Positions 6,101 to 42,400 of a stretch of 64,000 nt of DNA are shown here, one piece after another. The notes below the pieces were generated by a model. The model saw only the letters and a list, made by a program, of their open reading frames with translations. It was not told where the DNA came from and made no database searches. Source of the DNA: Phallusia mammillata (taxonomy: Eukaryota). Within the stretch, counting starts at the first letter, position 1; the number at the start of each line of letters is the position of its first letter. The stretch is taken from the NCBI GenBank assembly GCA_965637545.1, contig OZ281494.1, positions 9,238,001 through 9,302,000 on the forward strand. The letters are read 5' to 3'. The position numbers and the translations under genes were made by a program.

Positions 6101-8283
6101 TCTACATACAACTGAAATTCAATTCGTAGGCCATGTATAAATGACACCATAAAGCCCTTACACCTGACCATCAATAACATAAAGCAAGTGCATTCCCTAG
6201 CTGAAGGTTATATTGTAATGATGTCTAAATGCAAATGAGGGTCAAACAATCTGTAAAAAACTATCTTACCCTAAGGTAGAACAAAATGGTCATTGCGTAG
6301 CTGAAGATCGAGGCAGTAACAGCAAGAGTAAACTGTTTGTCATGTATTTTGGTGATTGGTATATCATGGTAGTAAAACAATCCATATGTGATCAATGTTA
6401 AAATCAGACTGTAAAAAGCTGCAAGAAAAAAATTTAGGTGATCCTCAAAATATTTCTGCTTGAAAATTGTACTTACCACTTATTCTGTATGGAAGACGTT
6501 TGCCATGTGGGGTAGGTGGGCCATCAAGTATGTAACCGAATGGAAGAACATATATTATGGCATGGAATAGCAGGAATCCAAAAAACATTAGGACAGACTC
6601 GAGATCATAGTAGTCGTGTAAATTTCGAGGAATCATAGAAAGTTTAAACTGTGAAAAATGTAATTTATTATTGAATTTAGGTATAAGCAACTTTTGTTGG
6701 GCTTTTGGTCATAAAAAGTCTTGAGTTATACATAATTTATTGTGTACCCAAAAGTGCATTGACAAACTCAGGGTACAAAATTGTTTTGTTTGGGGTGTTG
6801 ATGTAACGATTTGTTCACAAGTAAGATGTGTATGTGCTACCTGCTGTAGTATCCGGGGCATTGACAACCTACCTTTGTGACACTGCAATCATTTTTAGTA
6901 CATCCAAGCACAACAAGGCAGGGCAGAATAGGAATGGTCATATAAATGAGAAAGGTTCCTAAAACACCTCCAAATTCCTTCTCATGGCTTTTACCAAGTT
7001 GTGCAACTGGTTTTGTGGGAGCTGACACTGTCTCTGTCTCTGACTTTTCTCTGAGTCTTTGTCTGGTGACCATGTAGCGTGAATCAGAAACTGGAGATTC
7101 AGTGACCAAAGTCTGTGGAGATAATAACTGGTGTGATGATGTATATAATATAACTGAACTATGGTTCAATTTTTTTTTTTTTTAATAGGCAAATTTATAA
7201 AATGCAAATCAAAAGGCTTGATTAAAATAAATTGAAAACATGACACTTTTTTCCATTATTAAACTTTAGCAGTGACCACTCTACTTATTACGAATATCAA
7301 ACCAATAAAGATTGAAAAATGAAGAATACATATGTACCTTTGCCTTTGTTGCAATGACTGCACCCTTGGTGATGGTTTTTGTTTCAGTGATTGATTCAGT
7401 CACTTTTCTGGTGGCATTTCCAGATTCAGATCTTTGAACCCTAACAGTCAATCGTTTCTCCTCTGCAGAAGAAGATGAAGACTCAGTGCTCGGAAGTTTC
7501 CTGCTTCTCGATCTTGAAGGACTTTTTTTCTCAACTCCATCAACAACAGTTCTTGCTGTAATGAATTAAATTTTAAAATATTTATCAAAAAACTTCTGAG
7601 CTTCAGTTGGTTTCACTTTACTCATTTTATTACACAGATGTTTCGACAAAAACAATTGTCATTGTTAAAGCTACTATTTAAGTCCGTGTCTTGTGTACCT
7701 AAGTTGGGATCATGATTTTAACAAAAAACAGATACAGAAAGTTTGGTGACTGCAGACAACACAGTTGTAATTTCTACTGGATTCAGTATGCAACAAAACA
7801 AATGTTTTTGTAGCAACACATTCTAGCGCTAAGACCGAAGCTTTACCACCATAATTTTGGTTGACTCACGCCCAAAATCATTTTTTAAAAGTCCAAAAGC
7901 CAACACATTCGAATAAATCACAGAAAGTTATGATAACAAAATCAACCTACATTTTGCTTTTCTTCCTGGGCTGCGTCCCGGACTACGACCTGGCGATCTT
8001 GACCTTCTGCGAGACCGTCCTGGTGACTTTGCCCTTTTGGGGCGAAAAGATTCTTCTGTCTAAAAAAGGACAGGTCATGATCATTTTTAGACCATTCGCA
8101 GACTTCAAAATGTATTAAGAAACATACTTTAAGGTGTCTCAATTCGACATCCATCAATGTTCCATCCTCAAACAAAACTTCAGCTATTTCTTCATCTTCA
8201 TCCATGTTTTTTACAACTGCATGGAAGTATAGAGAGCTCCCAGGCCACTTGGCCATCACATTATCTCCAACACACCACTTCAT
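3169..8283 (-). CDS. LBR: Lamin B receptor (Tudor + RS region + ERG4/ERG24 sterol reductase domain), 624 aa
   Basis: 12 GT-AG exons with consistent phases: 8283-8128, 8059-7951, 7555-7338, 7127-6873, 6648-6477, 6418-6270, 5769-5620, 4818-4693, 4541-4373, 4302-4222, 4064-3936, 3329-3169 (1875 nt with stop). Motifs: Tudor VMAKWPGSSLYF, RSRSPGR, EFGGVLG, GREMHPR, LLISGLWGVVRHPNYLGE, YCQRVQYRVIPYVF*. Confidence 0.95.
3414..3601. mobile_element. hAT-type MITE (degenerate)
   Basis: Imperfect TIRs CAGGGGTGTTCAAAC and CTCTTGGACACCCCTG. The flanking 8-mers do not match, so no TSD is confirmed. Confidence 0.6.
5029..5430. mobile_element. hAT MITE in LBR intron 7
   Basis: TIR TAGGGATGTGCC / GGCGCATCCCTA; perfect 8-bp TSD GTCTCCCC (5021-5028 and 5431-5438); subterminal CCGAGC repeats. 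Confidence 0.9.
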
Positions 8284-9327: not shown

Positions 9328-9338
9328 GGGAAAGTTCC
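9328..9338. promoter_or_regulatory. Candidate NF-kappaB site upstream of the NFKBIZ-like gene
   Basis: GGGAAAGTTCC (reverse complement GGAACTTTCCC), close to the kappaB consensus GGGRNWYYCC. Confidence 0.4.
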
Positions 9339-9883: not shown

Positions 9884-10224
9884 GCGACCTTTTTTTCTCG
9901 AGGCTGCGCACTTGTTTACCAGTTGAAATCCTTTTTAGAGCGCTGCGAGGCTGAGTTTCTGCGAAGCTACTTGAGGCGACTGCGAGTGCTGGTGTGTTGT
10001 GCGTTTGTCTCTGACAGGAGTTGTTTTAAAGGTGCAAGCTATTGCTTGAAACTAGCACACGTTTTTGTAAAGTTTAAAATGTGTTATAGGCGTTTGTAAT
10101 TTCATCATGTGTTTGGTTATTCTGCAGCGTATTTTGTGTCAAAAATTATTGTAAAACATTTTGAAGTGCTGTTGTGGCACGACTCTGACCAACTCACAGC
10201 AACTGAAGTCAGCAACACCCAGTT

Positions 10225-13200
10225 ATGGAAGTGCTAGGCTATAGCTTCCCAATCGAAGTTCCCAGTCCATCTGGTAGCGACGATTCAGGAATAGGGTTAT
10301 CTCCAAACCCTCCCCCTTGCGACCTGAGGGCGTGCGGTCCTTACGCGTCGGAAAGTCCCCAGGAATCCCATTTCGTCAGCAAAAGTTTCTACTCCGGAGA
10401 ATGTACGGAAGGCGGCGCATTCAACGGCTGGGCTTATAACCAACAGGGTCCTGACATCAACGCCAGTTACCTGAATGATTGTGCAGATACCAAGCACTTG
10501 CCAATTCGCAACAAAGACAACTTCAGTCAAGAGATAGATAACTTCTTGGAATCAATTGTGGTTCAAGAGAAAAATATCACCAACAAGACCAACAGAAAAA
10601 ACGCGCCACTTCAAAAGCGTTTGAGCAACGTTGACATTAACACGAAACAAATGTAAGCCCTATGTTAGTTTTAATATTTAATGTCTACGATGTCGACTCA
10701 CAGGTTGATAATTATAGGTGCACAGAATTCAAATTACCATGTCATACGGGCGGTCTATAACAGAGCGCGTCTCGCTTAGCGTGTAGTCATTCGTGTTATG
10801 TAGACATGATGTGTCTAACGGTGTGGGGATAATATGTTTACCCTTTACGAATACAGCTTGAAGCTTGAAAGGTGTCTTCAGCCAAAGACGGGAAACGGAA
10901 AGCCAAGACAGACATCTTCTAAGAGAAAGATGAACCAAACTAGGAAGACCGGCGGAAGTCGTCCAGGTAGATACTTTGTTTATTTCTTAGTTTTAGTAAT
11001 CAAGGTAAAATGATACGCCTTTAGGTGTGTAAAATCAGTGGATGCTATTATTAACAACAATTTTTATGTTATAGCTGTTTATCCTGGAGTGAGACCAAAA
11101 ACAGTTCGAGAAGTTTTACAGCATATGCGCCAGACAGGGGTAAGTGTAACTGATATTTAAGTGATGCCTGGCAACAGTGTATTGGAAATGTTCTTGTAAT
11201 GTTTCAGAAAAGCCCAAGAAGCCAAAGTCGAGTACAACAACAGCGACCGATGCAGTTCCCAACCCAAAATCAACCTATTTTGCCTCATGTGCCTCAGCAA
11301 ATGCAAAACATCCCATTCCCCCCTCACCAGTCAATGAGCCCTGAATACATGGATCAGTTTCGACTTGCAGCATCCCCGCCCATGCGTTCCAATCTCGGTT
11401 ACCCATCGCCAGCCTCCAATTTCTCCGAGACCCCGCCTCCATCGTACATCTCGGAAAGCAGCAACCCACAAGAATTGGTCGGCGACTTCTGTGGAGACAA
11501 CTTCGACAACATGTCTATTCAACCCAACATGTCCCCCTTCGACCAAAACCAGATGTGCTCGTCTGAAGTTTTTACCTGCGCGGAGTCCAGGTATAACATC
11601 CAATCGATGAGCCCCGCTACAACTGTTGCCGCAGCCGGTTCACCCTACCAGAATCCCACCAACTACCCAGACTCCCCTTACGCCATCCAACAGCCAAACT
11701 TCGCAGCACCTGACGAGTTCAACGACATGCAAGCTTTCGTGACCTCACAGAACTTCGTGCCGACTCAAGAAAACTTTCCGAGCTACTCGTGCATGAGTGG
11801 CTCTCAAACATACGGTAAGTGACACAATTTCATTTAAACTTTTCTGACCAAAATTTTATGCCTTTATTTTATTCCGCAGAAACTCCAGCGATTCCTATTA
11901 TGTCGCCTTATACGCCTGTTACAGGTTGGTTTCGTTTTTAACAGCGTGATACGTTTTTTTCATTTGGCAACGTCTGTAAAACCTTGGCTTTATTTTCGTA
12001 GGCGCCGAATCTGACGAGAACCGAAGTTTCATTCACCAACTGGTGATCAATGGAAACATGGAGGAAATTTCCATGCGATTGAGCCGATTTCCTCATGCAG
12101 TGGTGGCCGAACAAATTATCAACTCAAAGGACGACGAAGGAATGGTAAGTGGATTTCTCGTTTTAAAAACTGAGTTCTATGTTGTGTATTGACTAAACGC
12201 CATTACTTAGACGCGAAAACAATTTCGCAATTGCATTGAGGTATTGTCTGTCAGGCTAAAATGTCACAGCGGTCTCGTAATTCCTCTTTTCTCCCCACTG
12301 TTGTCCCGGTACTGTAATTACGCTTACGATTTGGAATTTACAGGGCACATTTGCATTGTAACAAGTCGCAGGGTAGGCCCGGCTCATCGAAACTTATAAT
12401 TTTTGTACTCGATCATCGAAGTCCGGACCAATTTTACAATTTTTAACTAATCGCGCGGCGGTCTAACCAGATTTGCAATCTAACCATGGTTTCAACTACA
12501 GCGAAAATATCACTAGTATCCGTTTTATCGACCTGTTTTTGTTAAAGGCCAGTGCAGCTTTTAAATTTGTTTTACCGCTCTAGTTGTGTAATTTGCGTGG
12601 CCGATTTCGCGATGCGACCTTCCATTAGGCCGATAGCGTCGGCTACGCATTTATACATAATCAGATCACTGGTTTGCCGACCGGAAAAACACGGATTCGA
12701 CTTTGTGGGCGTTAGCAATGCATGTGCATTAGTGACAGGTGCCCTTTTATTGGTGTTTACCACTTCCAGGGGAAACGACTTGTCGCTGTTGGGGGCCTTG
12801 ACAGCAAATACGACTCGATCCATAAAAACACACGGTTAATGTTTAACGTTTTGATGAAATTGATTACACTAGCGACGATTCTTTTGTGTAGTGGTTTCAC
12901 TGGAAACAGGCCTAAACCAGCAACTCTATAAATACCCGTTTATTAACAGAAACCCAGCTTAGTATGAGCAAGAACATATTGCCTTATGTCTTAGTTTAAA
13001 CTATTTAACACATAGGCTTCAAAAAACTGAAGACGTTTAGGCACTAACGGAACATCTTACATGCAAAGCGCATATACCAACGGAAGGGGCTGAATACAGG
13101 GCGACTCATCTTTCAAACCATCACAAAATCGCCGACCGTTTGACGCAACCAGTTGCTTACAGTGGTGAAACCACATCGCGCTTGCCTGTCTCATTATAGA

Positions 13201-16200
13201 CTCGTATATATAGTCTCTGGCGTCACTTGGCTTTTTGAACCAACGCAGAGGGCAACTGACGGCGACTGGTTCTAAAACAAACATTTTCGCATTGATTGCT
13301 CAATTAATTCATTGCCTCAGCAACCCAAGTTTCCCCACTATGATTTTCCACATCTAGAGATAGCTGGTATTTTTTGAGAAATACGATACCGCTCGTTTTG
13401 TTCAGTCTTCAGTCGCTTGTTCTGCCGTGTTCGTATCTGTTTCGGAGCAGCGCCTCAGGCCCAATGCACAAAATTCCTTGGCACGGGGCAAATTCGAACT
13501 TGAAACGGTTAGCGGTTCACGTTTTTTTTCAGAAAATTTCACCTCTCCTAGACGTTAAAAAATTTCGCTGTAAGTTCTTTTGCTAAAAGTTTTTGCTGTA
13601 AGCCTACCCGCCTAGGTCGTGACAACAAAATCGCATTTTCAACATGTGGGGAATTTCGCCACTTATACAAATATAGTAAACTCAAAAATGGGCAAAAAAC
13701 CCGCGACAAAAGTTTTATGGCGGCCACTGTCGGGATTTTTGCTGTAAGGCGATTCAGTCGAGCGCGACGACCATTTCAGCGCACCCTAAGCTTTTAGTAC
13801 AGGTCTGGAAATTTCGTTGTGGTACAACGCTCGACAAAACTTCACTTTGCTAGGGAACTTACACCAAGTTATTTTTAGAATCCGCATAATTCGATTTGCA
13901 AGTTGAAGCTTAGGGCATGGCGAGATAATTCGCGATTGTTTGGGCGACTGGGAAATATCCGACAACGCTAAACAATGCGCGTTTGGTATAGACAGCTAAC
14001 CAAGACTGTCACCCTACATTGGCCCGTTCTCGCGTCCCACTGACGTCACAAGCCTTCATCCGGACTTTGCGACGCGCATTTATTTTAAAGATCCAAGGCA
14101 GCGAGTCAGAATGCGATTGTCCGTGTTAGTGCGACTCTCCACGACTACTTGCACGGATTTGAAACACGAAAAGCTTCTTTTCTGACTTTGCGCTCCACTG
14201 CTTATGCACACAGATAAGTCCATATTTGCCGAAGCTAATAATCAATAGCTTTTTTGATAAAGCTTGTTTTGTAAGAGGTATGGAGCGGTATATTTTTTAT
14301 TCCATGAAAACGTTTTGTCGCGTTTCTTTGGAGAAATTTAAAGCGTGCGAAATTACAAACCAGTCACGCATCGATTGAAAAACAAGTTTTGGCAATGCAC
14401 AATAGTTAAAATTGCCAGTCATATGAATTTCTTAATGCAAGCTACAACGCAGCAAGTACGAAAAGCGTGATGTGCGATCTAACGGCCAACTCGTGACCTA
14501 TACCCGTCACAAGATTATTAGCGAGGTCTGCAGCAAATCTTGCTCGACCAGCAACCCGCGCATAGCTTGTATGAATCATCGCATCGCTCGGCCGAACACC
14601 AAAGCAAAAGGTTTCAATCTACGCCCGAGGGGAAGGGACAGAGCACTATTCATTGGCGGCATTCGCACTCGGTTTGCGGCATTCGTTGTCCTCGCTACGA
14701 GTTGTTCTGAAACTCGACACCCTGTTTTGCGACGCCCAGTTGGTGTGATATTCAATAACAAGGGTTGTTCCGCTGTTTGCAGACCCCACTTCTGTACGCT
14801 GTCAAGACAAACAACATCGAAGCTGTGAGCGAATTGATGAAATGGGGCGCAGATGCCAGTATACCAGCCAACGATGGACAGAATGCGCTTCACTTTGCTG
14901 CTGAACTGCCTCCAAATATGATGGTAAGACTTCCATTTAATTTTGTAATGCGTATGTCATTGGTCAGATTTAATACTTCCCGGAACTGGTTCGTTACATC
15001 TTTACGAAAAAAGCACTGGTTACAAACTTCGTGCTCCACAATTCGTTTTTGGTGCCCAGGAAGCAGAATAACTGCACATCAGTCTAGACCCCAGTCAGAT
15101 CATGATGGGTGCGCGTGACAAACACTTACCAGTATACGCTTGTTGGCGCGCTCGCCTTGATTCCAATTTACGCTAATGAATAGCGAACTCTATTTTTTAC
15201 CCCAAACGATTAATTGTCTGGGCAAAACCAAATTATTTGCATGTCATCATATGAAATAGCGAAATAACCCCGCAGTCAACTTATGCTGGATTTTCTTTGT
15301 CTCTTTCAGAGCTTCCTGGCCGCAAAAGTTCCTCAATTCGGCGAGCTTACAAAAGGCACTGCAACTCTTAAAGCAGGTAAGCATCTTTAATTTGCCTATT
15401 CAAATCGCTAATTGTGGTGCGTACAATATACGGAAGGTGACAGTCAGGCCAACCGTCAATGTATGTGTATTGGATTTTTCGCTTGACCCTTGGTATTTTT
15501 CTTTCTTGTCAGGTCGCACCCCGCTGCACATAGCAACGGAGCAAAAGAATGTGATGAACATGGTCCAGCTTATGAGTCAAGGAGCCTTGCTAATGGCAAA
15601 GGTAAGCAAAGCAAACAACGACTTCTTTCGGTTTGCCATCGAAAACATGTGTCTAACCATATGTACCTTGTTTCAGGAGCAACACGGCGGATGGTCGGCG
15701 CTCCATATGGCTGTCAAGAATGCTGATGTGAAGGCAACGCAGGAAATCCTGTCCTTCGCCGCCTATGGCTTACCCAGCAACCAATCAGAGGCCCGCAATA
15801 AGCCACGTGACATCGACGCTTTGCGCGAGGTGGTCTGCCAACCAGCGTACAACGAGAACACGGCCTTACACTTTGCCGCTGGTAAGTAGCTTCACCTCTT
15901 TACGCTTTTCGAATTTGGGGTGTTGTTTAGAGAGGAGCGAGCTCTCGGGCGTCAGCTGCTTCCCTATCAGAAGGCTGCCAGTGCGGCTAACCCTCAAATC
16001 GATAATCACATCGACACACTTTAGGGTCGCGATTATAACATAATCAATAGGCAATCGTTTCTCAGTCCTTTGTGACGTAATCAGGTCTTGCTACTAGCTT
16101 CTTTATACATGGTACTGTTCTTAAACATCTAACTCTTTTTTGTAGAACTGCAAGTCTCCACAAGCCCAATGCTTGCTGATGCGCAGTCCCTTATCATCAA

Positions 16201-16590
16201 TCTGCTCATGGACAACGAGGCTGATCCATCGATCAAGAACCACCAAAACCAGTTGCCCATTAACCTTCTTTCTTCGGCCAACTCTCAGGTGAGCATCCAT
16301 GCCTCGTAATACGACTTTTACTGCAAGTACTCATGCATAATTTACAGTTCAGCTAGAAGAAGGCACTTTGGCAAAGTCATTCGCTTTATCTTAAAACATT
16401 TGTTTATTTTGTGCAGCTTTTCGAACGCCTGAGAGGTGGACGGAGATTTGGACACGGTAGCCGTTCGGCGATGAACAGCAGCAAAGGCGACATGAACTTG
16501 CCGCCTCTGCGTCCTGTCGTCAGCTCCGGCACCGGTGTCCGCTTCGGAGGCCCTTCTTCGGGGGTTGCCCGAACAACTTTCTTGGAATGA
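10225..16590 (+). CDS. NFKBIZ: IkappaB-zeta-like nuclear IkappaB ankyrin-repeat protein, 738 aa
   Basis: 12 GT-AG exons with consistent phases: 10225-10652, 10857-10966, 11075-11139, 11208-11814, 11880-11924, 12002-12144, 14783-14923, 15310-15376, 15513-15601, 15677-15881, 16146-16288, 16417-16590 (2217 nt). Six clear ankyrin motifs, including TPLLYAV, NALHFAA, GRTPLHIA and WSALHMAV. AYNENTALHFAAELQ...LLMDNEADPSIKN resembles human IkB-zeta AYNGNTALHVAASLQ...LLMRKGADPSTRN (recalled). P/Q/S-rich middle region. Orthology to NFKBIZ rather than NFKBID or BCL3 is inferred. Confidence 0.85.
13950..13960. promoter_or_regulatory. Candidate kappaB-like site in the long intron 6 of the NFKBIZ-like gene
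   Basis: GGGAAATATCC. A weaker GGGGAATTTC lies at 13648-13657 and TGACGTCA at 14041 in the same CpG-rich 2.6-kb intron. Confidence 0.3.
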
Positions 16591-39442: not shown

Positions 39443-42400
39443 TTATTCTTTCACTCGAAGAGCTAAACCTTCTTGATCATCTTCCTTGCATTCGTCTTTA
39501 CCAGGTTTAGGCTGAAAGAGCTGCAAGAATATTTTGTTAGAAATATTGAAATGTGTCCACTCCATAGACAATGCACGTGTACATGTGCATAGCAAAAAAA
39601 TTGGACGGGACAACAAATAAGTTCTACATTCGGGTTCAATAGAATAAACCGTCTCAATACATTTCGGATTTTTCACAACTTATTATATCAACCTTTAAAA
39701 ATTGTGACTAATTTGTATGTATAGAGCTCCTGTCATCCATACATCGTAAAACCACCTTGTAATAACTAGTAAGCTTAAGTTCATGGGATCTGATATTAAC
39801 AATCAGATTAACGGCTATCTCTACCGGTTTTAGAGCTTCGCTCAAGTAGGTGGGCAAATTGTTTTTATCATTATGTGTGGTTTTATCAAATATGAATTTC
39901 AAATCTAACTCTGCAATTCTTAGAGCCGACTGAAGAAGTCTACTTTGCAAAGCATAGTCTTTTACCTGATATATGTCATCTCCATTTCTGATCGTTTGTA
40001 CAATTTTGTAAATCGCATATCCAGGAATAAATACGAAACACATGACACTGATCAGGTGACCCACAACTTCTGTCCACGGGGGAAACACGTATTCGTTGTA
40101 TTTCAGAGGTTCAATCGTGGAAATGTAGTAGATTGATAACAGCTGTGACATTTCAAAATTGAGATAATTTGACCCCATTGTGAAGTAGCATATTAAATGC
40201 CAGGAAAGATTTTTTTTGCTGGAAAAAATACCACTTGAAACTATAATCGATATTTTACCGCGGTTATTGCAGGACTGACAAACTTCCATGATATCTTAAG
40301 CCATAGTCTTCTTCCCCGATGATCTCCGGTCATTTTGACGATATCTTTCCAATATCTTTCGAACCCGTAGAACCACGCCACCGCCACACACTCGCAAGTT
40401 GTGATCAAGAACCAACACCAACCAGAGTTCGCGTAGCGATTGAGAAGCTCAAATACGTAGACTCCTCCCTGCCACAGTTAGAAGAAAATATATTTAACTG
40501 CGGGTTTGCATTTAAATGTTTACCGTCAGGTTATTTTGGTAAATATGTATTGGATGATTTAATGTTTTGAATGTGCTGCAGCGATGCAGTATAATGATAT
40601 GTAGGCTATTTGCAGTTTGAAAGAAAATCTTGTAGATTCTAAAGAATCTTTAATTTAAATTCAAATTAAACTTCAAAATATCGGGGATGCTTTCTAAGAA
40701 ATTCAGGATTCCCAAGTTGGTTTATCTGCAGAAATATGTTGTCATCTCATTAAACAGTTTAGAAGTAACAAAAATACTTTCTTTCTTCTACCTGTGTAAG
40801 CATTGGTAAGCCAAGAAGCATGAGAAATGTGCAAAGTAAGGCTTGTGAAATCTCTCTTCCGTATCGATGTTGGCGTACCGTTCTAACGTTATCCATCAGT
40901 ACTGCAATAATCGCCTCAAGCACGACAAACTATAAAACAGCTGAAAAGTTTCAGTGAAACTTTTTAAGTTTTCTTTGCTTTGCTTCCCGCCTGTTGTTTC
41001 TTAAAAGAACCGATTTAAGCAACCTACTAGTTTATAGTTTATCGCTTGAACTCGACCAAGCCGTCAGTCATTCAACTCTCGATTAAGCTTTTGATGTGGA
41101 CCAGGCTTAAGTTGGAGACTTTCCACAAAAATCAAATACGAAATACCTGTGAATCAAATCCGAGCAATAATAGTGTCAGGAAGAAAAGTGCGCTCCACAA
41201 CTGCGGAAACGGAAGAAGTGACAATGCTTCAGGATAAGTAACAAACACAAGACCGGGTCCAGATGTTGCCACATCATGAATAGTTGTGTTCTACAAACAG
41301 ATGTGCGGTTTGATCAGCAGAAAGCTTTTATTGAATGAAGGAATTGAACACTTACCTGATATGTTGCCATATAACCAAGAGTTGAAAACACTGCGAATCC
41401 GGCTATAAAACTTGTTAGAAAGTTTCCAACGGCTATTGCAACAGCATCTCTGACAAAAATTTGAAACAAACTATTGTGTTGGAAAGTTAAGTTCCAAGTT
41501 ATTTTAGGCTCGCTGTTTTCTAAAATTGTATTGTTGCATGCCGGTATGTAAGTTAAATCATCAGAACAACGACCTTTAAGTGGATCCCAAGTGTAGGTTA
41601 CTTTTGGATTCGAATTCTTGAATACAACGGCCACACAAGGAACACCCATACGCCCAAACAATTTTTTGTGATGTATTTATCACCGTGTTGGTTGGTGGAT
41701 AAGGTGCTATTGAAAAAGTGGTTTGACTGGACGTTAATTAAGTAAAAATACCTGTGACGCGTTTTCAGAATTTCTGAATCGATTTTGGCAAAGTCAATTT
41801 TGAACAAGTGAACTAGAACATACCGACTATAGTTGTAACTCTAAGTACCCGCGAATTTAAAACCTAAATTACTTATCATGATATATCACCTCCAAAAGTT
41901 GTGATGGTAATTGTTGTAACTTCCGAGAATAATTAATGTGCCCAATCCAGGACCATTCGTGTAGATAACTTGAGAGCAAGCTCCTACCCAAGTCTGCAGG
42001 GAAAAATGATAGTTTACACATGACAGGCGAATGCTTCAATATTGGTTACCGAAATTTCCATTAGCTTTTCGACTTGCGGTGTCAGGTAGAAATATATTCC
42101 ACTCCATGCGCCCTCAAGTGTCGCACTTCGTATTGTTATAACCACGATAAGGAAAACTGGAAGTGTAGCAGTCACATAAACAATCTGTAAAACAGATGGA
42201 AAACTTATGAGCCAAATTCTATTTTCAACAACCCCAAAAAGTAAAGCTTGCGTAACCGATCGTATCTTTACAATTTTCGTTACCTTGGAGGTCCATTTGA
42301 TGCCTTTAAAGGTGCACAAATAGAAGAGGACCCACATTATCACATTGTAGAGTACCAGATCCGATCTAATGCTTCCTACTTCATTGATGCTTGTGGTAAG

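Follow-up and report, generated by a model that had tools for sequence, protein, structure and literature searches.

A small exon of an IkB-zeta-like gene in the tunicate Phallusia mammillata probably encodes a divergent OCA-type docking peptide

The OCA motif (PROSITE PS52003 / InterPro IPR047571) is characteristic of the POU2AF co-activators, and apart from these it is known only from the IkB-zeta family. In IkB-zeta, the motif was found by PROSITE in 2022 and experimentally confirmed in 2024 (Alpsoy et al., as cited through PMC12807641 and PMC11393961). For OCA-B, one of the POU2AF proteins, a 2026 review (PMC13043367) states an origin in jawed fish and the lack of an orthologue in lamprey. 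IkB-zeta is 718–728 aa long and contains the OCA motif, a nuclear localization signal (NLS), an activation region, and seven repeats; mammalian IkB-zeta couples NF-kB and the POU factors OCT2 and OCT6. Outside vertebrates, C. elegans NFKI-1 is an IkB-zeta-like gene, and both NFKI-1 and the sea urchin gene nfkbiz are atypical IkB genes tied to innate immune signalling. The latter is an IL-17-responsive, IkB-zeta-like gene (PMC5457136). We found no mention in the searchable literature of an OCA motif in non-vertebrate IkB-zeta-like genes, and the InterPro annotation IPR047571 may already cover such proteins. Here, we analyse a stretch of 64,000 nt from the tunicate Phallusia mammillata (assembly GCA_965637545.1, contig OZ281494.1, positions 9,238,001 to 9,302,000 of the forward strand), referred to below as the window and used for all coordinates. 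Exon 3 of an IkB-zeta-like gene in this window probably encodes a divergent OCA-type docking peptide outside vertebrates, a function predicted from comparison with peptides of known structure.

The exon occupies 65 nt at positions 11075-11139 of the forward strand. On sequence inspection it is preceded by ...ttatgttatAG, with the AG at 11073-11074 and a T-rich tract upstream of it, and is followed by GTAAGT, with the GT at 11140-11141. The phase is 1 on entry and 0 on exit, where the exon joins exon 4 at 11208, and translation of the last G of exon 2 (10966) together with exon 3 yields AVYPGVRPKTVREVLQHMRQTG. A preceding sequence-only reading of this DNA had described AG/GT borders and an in-phase bridge between exons 2 and 4, and both the sequence and the translation agree with that description. 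The label "micro-exon" used there is too strong, as the term strictly applies to exons of about 50 nt or less; at 65 nt, this is a small exon.

Four public sequencing runs of the same organism were compared with positions 10400-16390. Contigs from X1, X2, and X3 contain ten GT..AG joints over the gene and, because they are spliced, are treated as transcripts despite the record label "RNA?"; run X6 is colinear with the genome and for this reason is taken as DNA. The two joints that had been proposed as a check of the exon, 10966/11075 and 11139/11208, are both present in contigs of runs X1 and X3, which are two samples from one study. Omission of exon 3 from the model shifts the frame and produces a stop at codon 224, and hence the exon behaves as a constitutive coding exon. 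Its interpretation as an alternative cassette was rejected, since skipping shifts the frame and no contig with such a skip was seen. Exon 3 is therefore a real coding exon and, within the limits of these data, a constitutive one. The contigs differ from the assembly by nine single-nucleotide polymorphisms (four synonymous and five non-synonymous), none of them in exon 3, and nine are too few to show constraint on an exon of 65 nt.

The features of the exon that matter for the comparison below are as follows.

11075..11139, forward strand: coding exon 3, aa 180-201, with AG/GT borders and both joints in X1 and X3
11077..11100, forward strand: OCA-like coil V181-K188 (VYPGVRPK), aligned to V12-K19 of OCA-T1
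11101..11130, forward strand: OCA-like amphipathic helix T189-R198 (TVREVLQHMR), aligned to T21-R30 of OCA-T1

As references we used the OCA peptides of three PDB entries, namely, OCA-B (1CQT), OCA-T1 (9PFP), and OCA-T2 (9PFN), to which the exon-3 peptide VYPGVRPKTVREVLQHMR was aligned by MAFFT with one gap. Identity is highest with OCA-T2 (63%; 12/19 with one gap), followed by OCA-T1 (53%) and OCA-B (50%), and eight columns (Y, G, V, R, K, V, L, R) are invariant between the tunicate peptide and all three crystallised ones. Across the six frames of the whole 64-kb window, the exon-3 peptide gives the highest Smith-Waterman score against OCA-T2 (47), and the runner-up for any OCA peptide in these frames scores 39. 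The blastp-short search gave E 2.3e-4 on the 738-aa protein encoded by the gene and E 0.02 on the six-frame set, and a hidden Markov model (HMM) built from the three PDB peptides gave E 4.8e-4 on the protein.

In shuffles of the whole protein, the observed HMM score was reached in 0 of 20,000 cases and the Smith-Waterman score of 47 in 0 of 5,000. Local shuffles matter here, because the peptide sits in a region rich in K and R; when the 100 most basic residues around it were shuffled 20,000 times, a score of 47 was never reached (Gumbel p 1.6e-4), nor was it in 20,000 shuffles of the peptide's own 22 residues. The likeness to OCA peptides suggested by the sequence-only reading is thus borne out above composition-matched chance, and identity to the OCA-B/POU2AF1 peptide of 1CQT is 50%. 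We estimate from these comparisons that the probability of such a match arising by chance in this protein would be about 1e-4 to 1e-3, and this low value is persuasive because the family in question is the only one outside POU2AF known to have the motif.

The roles of individual residues have been established for OCA-T1 by crystal structures and a deep mutational scan (PMC12755459), and the OCA-T1 numbering is used here. The coil core Y-x-G-V-R is present in the tunicate peptide, together with the basic position 19. Its Y13 and R17 (here Y182 and R186) form a pi-cation pair that fixes the register in OCA-T1; G15 (G184) is also kept, as are V16 (V185), the backbone amide of which bonds adenine 5, and K19 (K188), a position where the charge is strictly required and Arg is the sole tolerated substitute. 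In the helix, T21, V22 (V190), the basic residue 23 (R191), the acidic residue 24, L26 (L194), and R30 (R198) are retained. The backbones of V22 and residue 23 form bonds to the POU-specific turn, and R30 tolerates no substitution. Of the helix pattern, V190, R191, L194, and R198 are kept and L25 is Val193; the hydrophobic face formed by V190, V193, L194, and M197 is spaced i, i+3, i+4, i+7, as in the OCA helix. Position 29 is Met (M197); in the OCA-T1 scan, K29M beat the wild type, and PROSITE gives Ile for IkB-zeta at motif position 20, which is the same site as OCA-T1 29.

The gene that contains this exon can be followed over its whole coding length. The coding model, built from the transcript joints and one loose contig end, consists of 12 exons from 10225 to 16590 on the forward strand, has canonical sequence at every border, and yields a product of 738 aa; its introns include short ones of 65-110 nt. 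Apart from exon 3, the parts of the model are the following.

10225..10652, forward strand: coding exon 1, aa 1-142 plus 2 nt, starting with ATG; acidic N-terminus rich in S, N, and P
10857..10966, forward strand: coding exon 2, aa 143-179; joints in transcript contigs
10900-10947, forward strand: basic NLS-like cluster K158-K173 within exon 2, with a putative NLS function
11208-11814 and 11880-11924, forward strand: coding exons 4 and 5, rich in Q, P, and S; joints in transcript contigs
12002-12144, 14783-14923, and 15310-15376, forward strand: ankyrin exons 6-8; joints in transcript contigs
15513-15601, 15677-15881, and 16146-16288, forward strand: ankyrin exons 9-11; joints in transcript contigs
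16417..16590, forward strand: coding exon 12, C-terminal tail and stop codon

At the 5' end, an in-frame stop at 10204 precedes the start ATG, and the donor joint 10652/10857 is present in contigs of X1, X2, and X3. The X1 contig (1,318 nt, with position 273 corresponding to window position 10400) starts, if it is colinear upstream, at 10128 after ...ttctgcAG. The segment 10120-10128 could therefore be the acceptor of an intron in the 5' untranslated region or a trans-splice acceptor, the placement being by arithmetic as the contig was compared only from 10400. At the 3' end, the X1-X3 contigs extend beyond 16288 and run on into the sequence that starts, following an AG, at 16417.

The protein begins with an acidic segment rich in S, N, and P (aa 1-120), followed by a strongly basic one (aa 121-214; net charge about +21) that contains the NLS-like cluster and, directly after it, the exon-3 peptide; the net charge across aa 151-180 is +9. 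The next segment (aa 202-418) is rich in Q, P, and S, so that 418 residues precede the ankyrin repeats (aa 419-681), after which there is a short tail. Pfam matches (Ank, Ank_2, and Ank_3) fall in exons 7, 9, and 10, and Pfam finds nothing but ankyrin. The region of exons 4-5 is probably disordered and is a putative transactivation region.

Exon 4 evolves very fast. Of the five non-synonymous differences between transcripts and assembly, four lie in this exon, and its 202 aa gave no matches against 1.84 billion representative proteins. Such a lack of matches argues against a vertebrate NFKBIZ and, like the short introns, accords with a tunicate origin. Metagenome scans found nothing either with exon 4 or with a degenerate DNA pattern for a short-linker peptide with H-[IM]-R. 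A word-index protein search, the length range of which does not extend to full-length proteins, found nothing for the read-through open reading frame (ORF) of exons 9-10 or for a 48-aa segment around exon 3. In the ESM Atlas, the look-up of exon 1 gave no usable match, and that of exon 10 gave generic ankyrin clusters only.

The host protein is probably a member of the IkB-zeta family, as judged from its sequence. In a PDB search, its last ankyrin repeat aligns with the IkB-zeta chain 9bor_A over one stretch of 25 bits (domain E 2e-4); IkB-zeta is the best natural solved match of this repeat, and no other IkB is among the matches listed. Exons 6, 7, and 10 gave generic ankyrin matches in the PDB or none, and so cannot tell IkB-zeta apart from ankyrin proteins of other kinds. 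The assignment to an IkB-zeta-like gene made by the sequence-only reading agrees with the architecture and with the last repeat, and the other repeat exons, with generic matches or none, add nothing to it. The predicted length of 738 aa and the predicted layout agree with those of IkB-zeta.

As in vertebrate IkB-zeta, the motif lies in the long N-terminal half of an ankyrin-containing protein, here a probable nuclear IkB, ahead of a putative activation region, and has a coil-plus-helix form with a hydrophobic residue at motif position 20 (Ile in vertebrates and Met here), where POU2AF proteins have Lys or Arg. The tunicate protein seems to differ from vertebrate IkB-zeta in that the linker is one residue shorter, the coil contains two Pro, and the first Leu is replaced by Val, and the NLS-like patch seems to lie before the motif rather than after it. 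With OCA-T2/POU2AF3, the structures of which (9PFN, 9PFO) show the peptide together with POU2F3 on octamer DNA, the exon-3 peptide shares VY-GVR-K-TV-E-LQ--R, 12 of 19 residues, whereas the spacing K-I-T-V of OCA-T2 is reduced to K-T-V. Identity to OCA-B/POU2AF1 (1CQT, bound to the POU domain of Oct-1) is lower (50%), and here the features in common are the Y-x-G-V-R-x-K core, the start of the helix, V-[KR]-E-x-L, and the terminal R. OCA-T2 is a small co-activator that carries the peptide at the very start of the protein and has no ankyrin repeats, the arrangement that defines POU2AF proteins. In the tunicate protein, by contrast, the peptide occupies aa 181-198 out of 738 and ankyrin repeats are present, and classification of the gene as a POU2AF member was rejected.

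In the explanation that we favour, exon 3 would encode an OCA-type docking peptide almost exactly on its own. The coil VYPGVRPK would run in extended form along the major groove of an octamer, its Val backbone facing adenine 5, and the helix TVREVLQHMR would bury V190, V193, L194, and M197 in the hydrophobic cleft of a POU-specific domain and form a salt bridge through R198. The octamer DNA envisaged for the ternary complex with POU domains of this species is ATGCAAAT. The ankyrin repeats at the C-terminus would engage NF-kB dimers, and the protein could in this way bridge NF-kB and POU factors on composite promoters. Candidate partners exist in ascidians, POU2 and POU4 having been reported in all 11 genomes analysed. 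The parts of this explanation differ in strength. The exon, its splicing and frame, the layout of the protein, and a similarity above chance are established here. It is quite probable that the peptide shares its ancestry with the OCA motif found in vertebrate IkB-zeta and in POU2AF1-3; docking of the peptide on a POU domain and DNA, proposed by analogy with the solved complexes, could go either way; and we give the favoured explanation as a whole (a constitutive exon, an OCA-homologous peptide, and bridging of POU and NF-kB) an even chance.

Several observations weigh against it. Within the peptide, Q14 is replaced by Pro, and V18, the aliphatic side chain of which contacts two thymines (5' and 6'), by Pro187; L25, at which every substitution was deleterious in OCA-T1, is replaced by Val193; and one residue (T189), not two, lies between the K19 and V22 positions, a shortening that must shift the coil relative to the helix by about one residue (residue roles from PMC12755459). 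The one-residue shortening, the change of V to P, and the retention of GVR-x-K and V[KR]E[LV]L had all been read from the letters and are seen in the alignment with the PDB peptides; judged by sequence, the OCA motif of the peptide departs from the usual one in two defining features, the spacing and the contact. Around the peptide, the NLS-like patch comes first, whereas a PROSITE figure legend puts OCA before the NLS in IkB-zeta. As to the partner, expression of Botryllus Pou2 is reported to be restricted to oocytes and early buds, and because it is found mainly in oocytes, a POU2 partner in immune cells is not assured and the partner may be another POU class. The departures within the peptide, namely the two prolines, L25V, and the shortened linker, are cited by an alternative explanation in which the exon carries the same ancestral motif with a shifted function: no DNA-dependent ternary complex would form, and the peptide would bind the POU domain without base contact or serve another partner. 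The changes do hit a contact residue (V18), a uniformly intolerant one (L25), and the Q14-G15-V16 register, and tunicate proteins evolve fast, as exon 4 with its lack of any detectable relative illustrates. However, the gap falls on the H20 column, which in OCA-T1 is the only contact-free position and has broad mutational tolerance, and thus the residue lost is the one dispensable; the Pro-Gly pair that results from Q14P could still form the same turn; and retention of the strictly required charges (K19 and R30) and of the Y-R pair fits continued selection on the same interface. We consider a functional shift somewhat unlikely.

Other observations that weigh against the favoured explanation touch on homology itself. 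The peptide is unseen by default phmmer against the PDB (E up to 10), by Pfam, and by standard BLASTP, and when the HMM is gap-averse, its score is about equalled by that of a noncoding ORF at 6229-6276 in the six-frame set. The expectation of the sequence-only reading that the motif would exceed background in an OCA HMM therefore stands with respect to the protein (E 4.8e-4) and its 20,000 shuffles but not with respect to this ORF. The silence of the standard tools, the noncoding ORF, and the net charge of about +21 over aa 121-214 would all be expected if the resemblance were due to chance or convergence, the peptide being a basic amphipathic segment in a 100-residue region rich in K and R that serves nuclear import or some other interaction. 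Weighing against such an origin are the shuffles of local composition, of which 0 of 20,000 reach the score (p about 1.6e-4), and the rank of the peptide as the best OCA-T2 match in the window, at least 8 raw units above any other. Moreover, the matched columns are the functionally critical ones and not K and R alone, and the match occurs in the sole non-POU2AF family known to have the motif. A fortuitous resemblance is accordingly regarded as unlikely, and homology to the OCA motif, with POU docking, continues to be the explanation that we favour.

Potential binding sites and the neighbouring genes were also recorded. A kB-like decamer, GGAAAGTTCC, is located at 9329-9338, about 0.9 kb upstream of the ATG, and a second one, GGAAAGTCCC, at 10350-10359 within coding exon 1, where it is probably due to chance. 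No octamer was found in the promoter region, and the octamer at 6229 looks like chance. The ORF at 7942-8283 on the reverse strand encodes a Tudor domain of the lamin-B-receptor type (Pfam LBR_tudor, E 2e-10) and probably represents the initial coding exon of an LBR-like gene, which would lie upstream of the IkB-zeta-like gene in a head-to-head arrangement. A perfect tandem repeat (100% identical), with a period of 6,363 bp and at least 3.5 copies, occupies the window from about 41.3 kb to its end. The repeat bears exons of an SLC6/SNF transporter on the reverse strand, with identical ORFs of 131 aa at 42014, 48377, 54740, and 61103; it reflects either duplication in tandem at a very recent date or an artefact of the assembly. 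No family was found when all 64 kb were scanned with Rfam at gathering thresholds, and hence no curated hammerhead model reaches its cut-off at 1498-1648.

An evolutionary scenario may be outlined for the exon, in which the OCA motif arose in an ancestral IkB-zeta before the tunicate-vertebrate split, self-contained on a small exon, the POU2AF co-activators were derived from it later by duplication or shuffling, and dual co-activation by NF-kB and POU factors is ancestral. Taken in full we hold this scenario to be improbable, and the idea that exon 3 represents the module that seeded the POU2AF family is speculation. If a functional OCA-type peptide is indeed present in this non-vertebrate IkB-zeta-like protein, the coupling of NF-kB and POU factors would predate vertebrates. 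The motif itself would be older than the tunicate-vertebrate split, which would not date it to all invertebrates, and IkB-zeta would be indicated as its likely source. The tunicate peptide would then also be a natural variant, with a shorter linker, two prolines, Val for Leu, and Met at position 29, that probes the tolerance of the tripartite interface between peptide, POU domain, and DNA.

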